In this document: positions 30,974-34,644 of the stretch, one piece after another
Layout of the letters: each line of letters opens with the position of its first letter
Numbering within the stretch: position 1 is the stretch's first letter
From: Prasinococcaceae sp. CCMP 1430
Lineage: Eukaryota > Plantae > Prasinodermophyta
Length of the DNA stretch: 64,000 bases
Assembly: GCA_013416795.1 (NCBI GenBank)
Contig: RQSC01001231.1
Location: 1-64,000 of the forward strand
Reading direction: 5' to 3'
The notes under the pieces: model-generated
Seen by the model: the letters and a program-made list of their open reading frames with translations, nothing else
Told to the model about the DNA's origin: nothing
Database searches by the model: none
Translations under genes and position numbers: made by a program

Positions 30974-31774
30974 NGCACCGTGTGGCGCACGCGGCGGCGG
31001 CGGCGGCGCGAACTCGTGGCCCTCTCGCGCCGCGCCGCGCGGATTGCTCTATCCGCTTGGCAATTTCCCCATCAAATGAACGCCACAGGTCAAACCGAAG
31101 GGGCAGCACACTCAGAAGTCCTCAGCAAAACGAACCTGCGAGCCGCATGCGGCGCGGCGGGAGGAAGGGCGCACGCGGAGCGCCTTCCACCGAGGAAAAG
31201 ACCCAGGTCTGGAGGCGCGGGGTGGCGCGCCGGGCATCGGTGGAGGCAAGAACTGACCCAGGATTTCATCCGCTGTTGCCGGCCGGGGGGGGGGTGAGGG
31301 GAGGAAGAAGAAGGCGAAATACGGACGGGGCGGACGCGCACCCGACCGAGGGGCGATTCCGCAGCGCGGCCGGCCAACTTTTGTGCGGCGAGACGAAAAT
31401 GCGCACAACGCTGACAATGAATGCATATCGCACATGTCTTTTTACGTACATCGCTCCAAATTGAAGCGAAATAGCTGGCGGCAGATTGATTGAGCGTGGG
31501 ACCGCGTGACGGCCATCAGACCACAGCACCGCGCGGAACGGTTCAGGTTTCAGTTTGGGTTTTTATGCATGGTTCTAATTCGTATGCATTTTCACCAGAC
31601 GCTCCGGCGGGGTCCGTCGCGCGCCGCGCAGCACTGTGCTTTACTACGCTCGATCAAAGCTCACGTGAAAAAAGTGATTTCACTCGGAATTGTTTGGGAG
31701 AAATTGCGGTCGAAAATGCGTCGCCGCGCATCCGAATTGATGTGAGATCCAGCCACCGAAAAAACCCCCGCCAG

Positions 31775-31946
31775 CGTGGTGGGGCGCGGGGATGCCATGG
31801 GCGCTGGGCAGCAGTTCCCGATGCCTGGCTACGGAGGAATGATGGCGCAGCCGCCCATGCAAACGATGGACCCTGCCATGATGGCGCAGTTCCACTCCGC
31901 GGGCATGGCGCCTGGCATGCCAGGGCCGGGCGCGCCGGGGCCGTGA
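31775..31946 (+). CDS. Orphan Met/Pro/Gly/Gln-rich terminal exon or small ORF
   Basis: MGAGQQFPMPGYGGMMAQPPMQTMDPAMMAQFHSAGMAPGMPGPGAPGP* from ATG 31797, preceded by a CAG acceptor at 31772-31774. Confidence 0.4.
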
Positions 31947-32218
31947 GCTGAGCCGCTCGTGTCGCGGCGTGGCCTTTCTTCCAGGCGTGGAGGCTTGAGA
32001 GTGCATGCTCCTCTAGCTAAGCAAGCCTTTCGAGACTGCGGCGATGAGGGTCTGGGGTCTTCCTTCACAAACGCGCGAGCGCGACCTGAATGGACACGCG
32101 TCAGCGCCACGGCGCACCAGCGGCCACACGTTGAAAAAAAAAAACTCCATAGGATATTATCACCGTCGCCGCGAAACCTCGCCTGAATCACGCCACGGCG
32201 CGCGAGCCGCGCGCACGT

Positions 32219-32749
32219 TCATGCCGAGCGCTCGCCGCCGCCGCCGCCCTGGACACCCTTGTGCGCGTTGTACCGACGCTCGACCTCCTCTGCCAGGGCC
32301 GCGCCTGTGGGCGTGCGCCACTTGCCACGCGTCGAGTTGAAGAAGCCGCTGAGGTCCATCCCCTGCGCCTGCTCGTACTCATTGGCCTGCACAATCATCT
32401 CGAGCTTGTCGAAGTCCTTGACGAGGTTGGCCTCCTTCGTCTCGCCAGCCTCGTATTCATTCCACAGTGCCGCCACCTCGGCGGCCGCCGCGCCGCCACC
32501 TAGCATCTCTTTGATGCTCTCGAGCGCCTCGGCCTCGCGCCTGTGCTTCTCCTCGTCCGAGACGCCGCAGTGCGGCGTGATGTCACCCACGAGCGCTTCG
32601 GCCATGTCGTGCACGAGCGCCATCTTGATGCAGCGCGACGCGTCGGTGCCCTCGGCCCCAGCGAGCACGAGCGCAAGCGACGCCATGCGGAAGGAGTGGT
32701 CCGCGACTGACTCGGGCTCAGAGACCCCGCTGCGCACCCATCCGGTGCG
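32219..32749 (-). CDS. HDDC2: HD-domain 5'-deoxynucleotidase (HDDC2/YGK1-like); first exon lost at N 32873
   Basis: RTGWVRSGV..PESVADHSFRM, MALVHDMAEALVGDITP, LWNEYE and VKDFDKLEMIVQA.EYE; CAG acceptor at 32750-32752. Confidence 0.92.
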   Translation of the reverse strand, partial: RTGWVRSGVSEPESVADHSFRMASLALVLAGAEGTDASRCIKMALVHDMAEALVGDITPHCGVSDEEKHRREAEALESIKEMLGGGAAAAEVAALWNEYEAGETKEANLVKDFDKLEMIVQANEYEQAQGMDLSGFFNSTRGKWRTPTGAALAEEVERRYNAHKGVQGGGGGERSA

Positions 32750-33018
32750 CTGCGAAGCGAGTGCGTGCAGGAGCGCCGGCGCGGGCGACCGCCTCTCGAG
32801 TCAGCGGCAGGCGCGGGCGCGCGTCTGCACGCTCGGGCGCGCGCACGCGCGCGGCTGCCGGGCGTCCCACACNCACACACTCCCCCCCTGCTCCCCTCCC
32901 TCCCTCCCCTCTTGGGCGGGCTCCCGGCCGCAGCAGCAGCAGCGGCGGCGCCAACAGAGCGCGCGCAGAGCGGCGGCGGCAGCCGGCAGAGGTGGCGGAG
33001 CCCCACCAGCCAGCAGCC

Positions 33019-33915
33019 ATGGCGATAGGCGAGCTGGACTTCAGCGACCCGGCGACCGGCCGCCCGAAGGACGGCTGGCCGCCGAAGAACGAGGCCGAGA
33101 AGTTCGTGTACGTGCTCACGCGCCGCGACCGGGCGATGAAGGTGTGGAACAACGTGTACCAGTGCCGGCGCTGCGGGCTGCGCATCACCGGCCAGCCCGC
33201 CAAGATTCGCTGCCACAACACCGGCGTGCCCGAGGGCAACGTGCACTGCAGGCCGTGCACCAACCCGGACCCGGTCGCGGTCAAGCTCTTCTCGTCGATG
33301 GTGCGCACCGCGCCCAAGGGGCGCTACGTCGGCAAGTCGCCCAAGGCGCAGGGCACCAAGCAGGTGAAGGGCCACGCGCCCAACAAGGTGCTGGTGCTGG
33401 CCACGGGCGGCACCATCGACAAGGACTACACCAAGCAGGTCGACGGCGCCGGCTTCGAGTTCGGCTCCGAGCCGGCGGTCACGCGCATCCTCGAGCAGGT
33501 GACCACCAAGGGGAGTGTGCAGATCAAGGTGCAGCTGCACAGCAGCAAGGACAGCACGCAGATGACCGACGAGGACCGCTACGCGCTCGCGCAGGCCGTC
33601 GTCACTGCCAAGCAGCACAAGATCGTCGTGACGCACGGCACCGACACCATGCTCAAGAGCGCCCAGGTGGTCGAGGACGCCCTCATCAACTCGGGCAACC
33701 CGATGGTCAAGACGGTCGTCTTCACGGGCGCCAACAAGCCGCAGCGCTTCGCGCAGGGCGACGCCTCCTTCAACGTCGGCGCGGCCTTCGGCTGCCTGTC
33801 GGTCGCGCCGCCCGGCGTGTACGTCTCCATGGGAGGCGCCGCGCGCCTCGCCAGCGCGTGCGTGCGCGACGAGACCACGGGCGCCTTCACCGGCAAGCGC
33901 GCCAGGACCGAGTGA
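33019..33915 (+). CDS. BED-type zinc finger fused to a short single-domain L-asparaginase (298 aa)
   Basis: N-terminal W-x5-C-x2-C...H...C (WNNVYQCRRCGLRITGQPAKIRCHNTGVPEGNVHCRPC). C-terminal LATGGTIDKDY, SKDSTQMTDEDR, IVVTHGTDTM, VVFTGA and DASFNVGAA. No intron. Confidence 0.85.
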   Translation: MAIGELDFSDPATGRPKDGWPPKNEAEKFVYVLTRRDRAMKVWNNVYQCRRCGLRITGQPAKIRCHNTGVPEGNVHCRPCTNPDPVAVKLFSSMVRTAPKGRYVGKSPKAQGTKQVKGHAPNKVLVLATGGTIDKDYTKQVDGAGFEFGSEPAVTRILEQVTTKGSVQIKVQLHSSKDSTQMTDEDRYALAQAVVTAKQHKIVVTHGTDTMLKSAQVVEDALINSGNPMVKTVVFTGANKPQRFAQGDASFNVGAAFGCLSVAPPGVYVSMGGAARLASACVRDETTGAFTGKRARTE

Positions 33916-34644
33916 GGCGGCCGGCGCACGAGGCGATGAGCGGCGCCCGAGAGGCGCCCTCGGATGAGACACACAGAGTGACCGACCGCGTGACGCTCCC
34001 GGCTCACATGCAACCAGCTCCGCGCACACGCGCAGATGGGACGACGGCGTGGGCGCTCAACGCCGCGGCCCAAGCAATAGGCTGCCCCCCACTCTCACCC
34101 CCACCCCCACGAACGAGCGGACACGCGGCAGCTGCGCGTGCTCCGGCGCGCAAACACCCCCCCCTACCTTGTCCACTTCTTCACGCGAACTAACAACCGC
34201 ATGGCACACGCCGTGATGCTGCCAGGCGAGCGCCAAAGCGGTCGGCACACACAGAACTAGCCCGTTCACGCAATAATACATATATTTCTGGCGGGCTGCC
34301 ACCCACCACATTTGATTTATCACACGTCGGCCAGTTTACATGGAGTGCGACACGCGGCCGGACGCTTGGGCACAGTCAGTGTCGGCGTGTCTGCGCTTGC
34401 TAGAGAGTATGGTACAGGTGCAGCCGCCACGCGTCGACCGCGGGGCGCGAATGCTCACCCGCCGCGGGCGCTCACACGCTCGCAGTCGTCAGCGACGGTG
34501 GGCTCATCAGAAGCAAGAAGAGTTCCAAGGGAGGAGCGGTGTGGCCGCGGCCCCAATGCTCGGGAAGTCGGCAGCGAGGTGCGACACAAAGCCCAGTGCA
34601 GCAGAGCGCGAGCGCTCGTGAGCCCAGGGCCAACGCGACACCGA

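Follow-up and report, generated by a model that had tools for sequence, protein, structure and literature searches.

A single exon of a marine green alga encodes a predicted BED-like, transposase-derived finger joined to a short asparaginase of the RrA family

We analyzed a 64,000-nucleotide stretch of DNA from Prasinococcaceae sp. CCMP 1430 (contig RQSC01001231.1 of assembly GCA_013416795.1, positions 1 to 64,000 of the forward strand; hereafter the window) and find that positions 33019-33915 form one coding exon in which a putative zinc finger and an asparaginase are encoded as a single unit. The finger resembles those at the head of hAT transposases, and the enzyme domain resembles RrA, the short single-domain asparaginase (scASNase) of Rhodospirillum rubrum. 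The architecture is new and restricted to one species; it joins modules of two known kinds, one of them an un-modelled variant, and does not represent a new principle. Based on this data, we tentatively propose, with a probability of roughly 0.45, that the protein is an active asparaginase tethered to DNA or to the nucleus by its finger.

Given that 59 stretches in the six frames of the window run for 298 codons or more without a stop, the length of the open reading frame (ORF) alone is no proof of a gene. Instead, we take the ORF to be a gene based on its codon periodicity and on the homology of both of its halves. In a codon-position scan of this sequence (~70% G+C), the G+C content of third codon positions (GC3) is 0.97-1.0 in each 90-nucleotide (nt) interval from 33019 to ~33870, versus 0.74 upstream in frame and 0.76 past the stop. 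Similarly, the G+C content of second codon positions is 0.46-0.53 within the ORF versus 0.66-0.84 outside of it (0.84 upstream). The switch in periodicity coincides with the first ATG (context GCC ATG G), and the codon signal is alike over the N-terminal 120 codons and the enzyme domain. A preliminary description, made from the letters of the DNA alone, had called a single intronless ORF without N and with uniformly high GC3, and the coordinates and the GC3 profile bear this out. The residues that it listed (W43, C49, C52, H66, C77, C80, TGGT at 129-132, HGTDT at 206-210 and KRAR at 293-296) are all found at those positions, and the Lys-rich linker that it described is evident as eight Lys or Arg and zero Asp or Glu in amino acids (aa) 96-125.

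By homology, the C-terminal half is a scASNase of the RrA family with a complete active site. Enzymes of this family comprise 160-180 residues without a C-terminal domain and are found in ~7% of bacterial species (Zhang et al. 2024, PMC10949315). Residues 123-286 match Pfam model PF00710 (Asparaginase, N-terminal) at E 7e-21 over profile positions 1-163 of 193, and the protein stops at aa 298, which leaves no space for a C-terminal asparaginase domain. Matches in NCBIfam to full-length type I and type II asparaginases and to GatD are partial and far below threshold. The best sequence matches in the PDB are the 185-residue RrA chains 8UOO and 8UP* (E 2e-22; 2.3e-22 for 8UOO), and the best long asparaginase in the same comparison reaches E 7e-9. 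In a Foldseek search with the predicted model, the top 25 matches are all RrA (target TM 0.85-0.90, root-mean-square deviation 2.0-2.9 A, E 1e-16 to 1e-13), followed by a truncated Pyrococcus enzyme at 1e-11. The full-length model was built with enzyme homologs only and is uninformative on contacts between finger and enzyme; the linker confidence that we report from it was obtained without alignment depth at the linker.

The catalytic residues of RrA are Thr16, Tyr21, Thr87, Asp88 and Lys158, and Lys19 is specific to the family (PMC10949315). We find that T132, K135, Y137, D178, S179, T208 and D209 of the window protein are invariant across 50 aligned scASNases (the window protein and 49 family members) and line up with the RrA motifs GGTIDKDY, KDS and THGTDT. 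The short single-domain asparaginase with intact catalytic motifs that had been recognized in the preliminary description is confirmed by the PF00710 match, which it had suggested as a check, by the match to RrA and by these active-site residues. The whole protein (298 aa) falls outside the 160-180 aa stand-alone size of the family, and the domain alone is family-sized. Enzymes of the RrA type assemble at nanomolar concentration into tight tetramers of unusual topology, and their active site is completed by a mobile loop together with residues of another protomer (PMC10949315).

To place the enzyme domain among its relatives, we used a homology search that returned 564 matches, including named bacterial and named eukaryotic proteins. 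In a tree of 119 domains, the window domain falls in the subgroup that holds all of the named eukaryotes together with Bacteroidetes, and its terminal branch (1.62) is among the longest. The same tree gives the window domain neither a supported sister nor a supported bacterial donor. The preliminary description had inferred a horizontally acquired asparaginase; this phylogeny demonstrates neither vertical inheritance of the enzyme domain nor its recent transfer from any identifiable bacterial source. The strongest argument at hand for a continuing importance of catalysis is that a branch of this length has kept all of the active-site residues. The named eukaryotic homologs are from three decapod crustaceans, two scallops and the green alga Cymbomonas (P0003-P0005, P0031, P0037 and P0074). 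In metagenomic gene calls, scASNases also stand behind other N-terminal segments (P0020, P0052, P0041, P0104 and P0107), including a dual-specificity-phosphatase-like Cys loop, GHMP_kinases_C, a PhzF fragment and TP_methylase; some of these fusions may be run-on gene calls.

Judged from its relatives and from a structural model, the N-terminal half is also a real conserved domain. A phmmer search with aa 1-120 against 1.84 billion representative proteins returned 41 relatives at E<1e-3, 14 of them at E<1e-10; the matches all lie within aa ~18-100, and many of the proteins have two copies of the finger. Across 40 aligned finger copies, the only invariant columns are C49, C52, G58, H66 and C80, and E27, R35, Y47, I63, R64 and G69 are nearly invariant (window numbering). 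The putative zinc ligands are thus spaced C-x2-C-x13-H-x13-C. The preliminary description had singled out the pattern W43-x5-C49-x2-C52...H66...C77/C80, of which C49, C52, H66 and C80 prove invariant; W43 and C77 are not conserved, as is also true of C65 and H76 of the window, and appear incidental. The window finger retains every invariant and nearly invariant residue of the family at ~45% identity to its nearest relatives. The AlphaFold (AF2) model of the finger has a predicted local distance difference test (pLDDT) score of 86.6 and a predicted template modelling score (pTM) of 0.73, and its layout consists of three short strands, a His-bearing helix, and a second, C-terminal helix past the last Cys.

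The finger family (P0121-P0156) has the consensus ...EE..h.VL.R....sN.kY.C.yC...F.GGpqKIRvHltG..eG.....C...P.. and no Pfam model of its own. About two dozen clusters at 50% identity, from uncultured eukaryotes, have two tandem fingers and no other recognizable domain, and these proteins look like repeatedly domesticated transposase fingers. One apparent relative with LVIVD repeats (P0148, 3300 aa) gave a short partial match and was set aside.

Where the finger comes from is indicated by the company that it keeps in other prasinophytes. The same finger is found at aa ~20-107 ahead of DUF659 in four hAT-like proteins of 539-845 aa (P0160, which is Pycnococcus provasolii XRB03840.1, P0165, P0166 and P0167), with E 1e-19 to 1e-26 for the finger, using a hidden Markov model of the family, and E 5e-5 to 2e-14 for DUF659. 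The nearest relative of the window finger (P0127, 46% identity) is colinear with P0167 over the finger and on into the first part of the transposase body. P0127 itself is a truncated hAT-like N-terminus of 193 aa, and a zf-TAZ gene adjoins it on its contig (L014 1483-2112, minus strand). The order BED-DUF659-(hAT) is a recognized plant architecture (PMC7761493), and the BED fingers of hAT transposases bind DNA (PMC7761493; PMC3606216). In a Foldseek search of 350,542 chains with the finger model, the BED domain of ZBED1 (2CT5) ranks first, and ZBED3 and ZBED2 are found at ranks 9, 11 and 15; the BED matches have E 0.46-2.3. With VIA-align, 2CT5 is again first and 2DJR (ZBED2) third, tied at Z 3.0 over 61-64 residues (64 for 2CT5). 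The BED fold combines a beta hairpin that bears the Cys knuckle with a helix that bears the His; the ligands of the finger model fall in corresponding places, and the fold scores are too weak to decide the assignment. Because the finger heads DUF659 proteins of other prasinophytes and because BED fingers are its top, if weak, fold matches, we conclude that it is a transposase-derived, BED-like CCHC variant that lies outside of every Pfam model. The preliminary description had matched it to the BED finger of hAT transposases; the derivation from transposases stands, and the membership in zf-BED and the BED spacing of ligands do not.

The name "BED finger" is therefore only approximate, and the finger is not demonstrated to be a member of PF02892. 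This holds for the family as well. No member tested attains the zf-BED gathering cut-off of 20.6 bits, the best whole-protein score being 18.6 bits (P0123), and some relatives give sub-threshold matches. For instance, 5 of 40 family copies match zf-BED at E<=1 (best 8.8e-4), and C2H2 models are about as good. Pfam searches with N-terminal pieces of the window protein gave zinc-ribbon matches at noise level only. A comparison of the finger-family profile with the PDB gave summed weak poly-C2H2 matches from the "Y-x-C-x2-C-x3-F" knuckle, from which we made no family assignment.

We find the combination of the two halves in this species only. The asparaginase domain is found in none of the 43 finger proteins retrieved and the finger in none of the 120 asparaginase matches listed, and a word-based search with aa 1-120 found nothing. 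Because a 132-aa fragment stands for the 90% cluster of the window protein, the full-length protein escaped the first search; the cluster contains no other full-length variant. The contig (L002) of the closest asparaginase homolog (P0002, 46% identity) lacks a finger within 14.8 kb, and we do not claim that it is syntenic with the window, as the similarity between the two is limited to generic ABC and TIG matches. A scan of JGI metagenome contigs with a single-protein query found one locus with the enzyme only and no fusion. A literature search found no description of a BED finger together with an asparaginase, nor any report of a metabolic amidohydrolase as the partner of a BED finger. The statement in the preliminary description that no protein with this architecture has been described holds across the protein, locus and literature searches.

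The gene itself is present in the ocean. Among environmental sequences, 17 contigs, drawn from TARA Oceans assemblies, a JGI sample and a Logan run, encode the exact 298-aa protein (P0168). Ten contigs that we retrieved are 99.1-99.8% identical in nucleotide sequence to window positions 32868-34108. In the ORF, their only departures from the window are four synonymous third-position changes, three in the N-terminal part (codons 15, 58 and 79) and one in the enzyme (codon 146), and a change of the stop from TGA to TAA, whereas the 337 nt of flank hold up to 11 differences and most of the variation. Given that these contigs were looked up by the exact protein, the absence of amino-acid variants among them is partly ascertainment. 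The stop at 33913-33915, TGA in the window, is TAA in L006, L009 and L012, which also share the change at codon 146 and so represent a second ocean haplotype. We considered and rejected the possibility that the ~1.23-kb contigs are transcripts: most end at simple repeats flanking the gene and three longer ones extend downstream into genomic sequence, which indicates that they are DNA. Identity to the window is 91-98% for one more contig (L001; coverage 0.9), whose sample looks unrelated. We set it aside as an unreliable second allele, as indels outnumber substitutions across the contig.

These comparisons establish the gene, both of its domains with their family assignments, the intact catalytic and putative zinc-ligand residues, and the absence of the fusion from all that was searched. 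This gene of a high-GC marine green alga encodes a finger of ~90 residues, a linker of ~25 residues and a scASNase, and the finger traces back to the DNA-binding finger that stands N-terminal in DUF659-type hAT transposases. From here on, we propose a working model. The enzyme half would hydrolyze L-Asn or a related amide to the acid and ammonia, and would probably be tetrameric like RrA. The finger would bind zinc and DNA, as the N-terminal fingers of hAT transposases do, with DNA binding in particular expected by analogy to the BED finger. The basic linker and tail would favor nuclear import and help the finger carry the enzyme to DNA or to the nucleus, and the tetramer would present four fingers. 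The activity of the enzyme, the binding of zinc and of DNA, the oligomeric state and the cellular location, like any physiological role, are all inferred.

A number of our results weigh against this proposal. Neither the whole protein nor its N-terminal pieces match zf-BED (PF02892), the model named as a check in the preliminary description, even at E<=10. The BED signature is Cx2CxnHx3-5[H/C] (Aravind 2000, quoted in PMC3606216), and the window finger departs from it, with a fourth ligand 13 residues past the His and no conserved His or Cys 3-5 residues after H66. The fold matches to BED fingers are weak (E 0.46; Z 3.0). DNA binding rests on analogy, and some BED fingers bind proteins. On the enzyme side, the column of RrA Lys158 is Lys or Arg in the family and is Arg in the window (R283 in "VRD"; the pairwise alignment to RrA itself ended short of this residue), and Lys158 was graded only moderately conserved among scASNases (PMC10949315). 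The affinity of RrA for Asn is only millimolar (PMC10949315), which makes the true substrate of the scASNase family uncertain. Lastly, the fusion occurs in one species only and may be young, the environmental contigs look like DNA rather than transcripts, and L001 carries frame-breaking indels of 1-2 bases at 33091, 33315/33318, 33332 and 33887/33890, in the finger, linker and C-terminus.

Some of these points would also be expected if the gene were a young, species-restricted chimera, that is, a cytosolic scASNase with an appendage, in which the finger has no role at DNA and either binds protein or RNA or is nearly neutral. The confinement to one species fits this explanation, as do the absence of a finger from the closest asparaginase homologs (46% identity), the several unrelated N-terminal segments behind which scASNases are found in metagenomic gene calls, and the L001 frameshifts. 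However, the finger keeps the invariant and nearly invariant residues of its family at an identity of only ~45%, the variation of the finger region in ocean populations is synonymous only, and codon bias is equally strong in finger and enzyme; we consider a chimera of this kind unlikely, if a serious contender. A more radical explanation is that there is no fusion at the protein level, the asparaginase being made from an internal start such as M94 and the finger being a separate ORF or an untranslated upstream frame. A prokaryote-style gene call on L001 (P0001) does begin at a GTG just before the enzyme domain, and in-frame Met codons are present inside the protein at positions 40 and 94. Against this, both parts share one stop-free frame in which GC3 is equally extreme from the first ATG onward, the finger region forms a conserved, foldable domain, and the full 298-aa product is called on ten or more independent contigs, all of which make an internal start highly improbable.

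The remaining explanations accept the fusion and differ in what the enzyme domain does. It may serve mainly as a tetramerization scaffold for a four-fingered DNA binder, with catalysis secondary or vestigial, in a regulator of the domesticated-transposase type where the tetramer replaces the oligomerization that hAT transposases supply themselves. The tight tetramers formed by RrA-type enzymes at nanomolar concentration (PMC10949315) are in line with this idea, as is the long branch of the enzyme domain, and most non-transposase members of the finger family have two tandem fingers, which suggests that multivalency matters. Nevertheless, all seven conserved active-site residues outlast the long branch, arguing that catalysis is still under selection, and a mainly scaffolding role is in our estimate quite unlikely. 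Alternatively, in line with the nuclear regulator suggested in the preliminary description, occupancy of the enzyme domain by Asn/Asp (or Gln/Glu) might control DNA binding by the finger and make the protein a transcription regulator that couples gene expression to nitrogen status. The architecture is compatible with such a sensor, and a mobile loop and a cross-protomer site (PMC10949315) make a ligand-dependent conformational change conceivable. But a model that drew on enzyme homologs only predicts no contact between the domains, whose linker is long and probably flexible, there is no evidence for allostery and no precedent was found in the literature, which leaves nitrogen sensing very doubtful. 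A broader notion, a chromatin- or DNA-bound regulatory amidohydrolase that acts either as a metabolite-gated transcription factor reading Asn/Asp or as a finger-targeted deamidase of nuclear substrates, is a long shot; if true, the genome would be tied directly to nitrogen status in a green lineage that branched early. We retain the tethered, active asparaginase as our working proposal. The features on which this analysis is based are collected in Table 1.

Table 1. Features of the finger-asparaginase gene and its immediate flanks (window coordinates)
Feature	Position	Strand	Basis or remark
Whole gene	33019..33915	+	single exon, 298 codons + TGA, no N
N-terminal CCHC zinc-finger domain (predicted), hAT/DUF659-type, BED-like	33061..33333 (aa 15-105)	+	relatives, alignment A2 (40 finger copies), AF2 model
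Span of four invariant putative zinc ligands	33163..33258	+	C49 (33163-65), C52 (33172-74), H66 (33214-16), C80 (33256-58)
Lys-rich linker, probably flexible	33304..33384 (aa 96-122)	+	outside both domain profiles; pLDDT 39-66
scASNase domain (predicted)	33385..33903 (aa 123-295)	+	PF00710, 8UOO match, Foldseek, pLDDT mostly 85-97
Active-site loop T132-I-D-K135-D-Y137 (RrA Thr16, Lys19, Tyr21)	33412..33429	+	invariant in 50 scASNases; roles per PMC10949315
D178-S179 (RrA Asp57/Ser58, substrate binding)	33550..33555	+	invariant in alignments A3 and A6; RrA "KDS"
T208-D209 of HGTDT (RrA Thr87/Asp88)	33640..33645	+	invariant in alignments A3 and A6
Basic KRAR, possible nuclear-localization-type patch	33895..33906 (aa 293-296)	+	sequence present; function by inference only
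(CA)n/C-rich simple sequence, N at 32873	32860..32900	.	most shorter contigs end here; L001 homology starts
Poly-C tract + ~48 nt absent from aligned environmental contigs	34085..34157	.	downstream contig break point

The flanks of the gene show additional structure. Upstream and on the minus strand, an exon of an HD_3/HDDC2-type phosphohydrolase (32219-32788; PF13023, E 1.5e-45) is divergent from the asparaginase gene. A TGA closes the frame of this exon just upstream, with no ATG, so that a further 5' exon is needed and introns must be present in this genome, even though the asparaginase gene has none. The 1.1 kb that contain the HD gene (window 31771-32866, compared with L001 4073-5511) are replaced in L001 by 1.4 kb of unrelated sequence; the replacement is flanked by colinear homology, and the switch is at the (CA)n/poly-C tract beside the N at 32873. 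The first 27 nt of one TARA contig (L004) do not align to the window, and it matches L001 from its nt 14, so its 5' end appears to follow the L001 version. Behind the switch in the HD region lies either structural variation or a join made during assembly at the simple repeat. Downstream of the gene, the ~48 nt past the poly-C tract (34108-34157) are skipped in the alignments of L001 and L004-L006, a homopolymer length difference between the assembly and the environment.

The scASNases were defined in 2024 and in bacteria only, and eukaryotes go unmentioned in the paper on RrA (PMC10949315). The gene described here shows that the family is present in eukaryotes. The physiological substrate and role of the scASNases are open questions given how weakly RrA binds Asn, and a natural experiment in which a scASNase is combined with a transposase-derived finger of a nucleic-acid type points to a possible role in the nucleus or at DNA. 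The gene also reveals a finger family without a Pfam model that heads DUF659 hAT-like transposases of prasinophytes and that, in uncultured marine eukaryotes, appears to have gone through many domestications, yielding proteins with one finger or two.

Comparison with known systems places each half near a described family. Like RrA, to which it is ~33% identical, the enzyme domain has ~170 residues, the same predicted fold and no C-terminal domain, and it keeps the counterparts of Thr16, Lys19, Tyr21, Asp57, Ser58, Thr87 and Asp88. In contrast, RrA and the published family are stand-alone cytoplasmic proteins of bacteria with 160-180 aa, whereas the window protein is eukaryotic, has 298 aa including an N-terminal finger and linker of 122 residues, sits on a long branch and has Arg in place of Lys158. 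The scASNases of shrimp, crayfish, scallop and Cymbomonas belong to the subgroup of the window domain (motif DKDYP..GYAFE; 40-45% identity) and are 167-178 aa in length; none carries the finger. For the N-terminal half, the likeness is to the BED domain of hAT transposases and ZBED proteins (PF02892; PMC3606216; PMC7761493), given a small Cys/His finger that stands N-terminal to DUF659 in the relatives of the window finger, a C-x2-C knuckle followed by a His-bearing helix, and ZBED1 and ZBED2 as the best, though weak, structural matches. It is unlike BED in the C-x2-C-x13-H-x13-C spacing of its family and in that the aromatics typical of BED N-termini are not conserved. The closest parallel for the fusion as a whole may be the captured BED fingers of plant BED-NLR and SLEEPER/ZBED proteins, in which a transposase finger was likewise recruited into a host gene (PMC7761493, PMC3606216). 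In those proteins the partner of the finger is an immune receptor or the transposase body, whereas in the window protein it is a predicted metabolic amidohydrolase.

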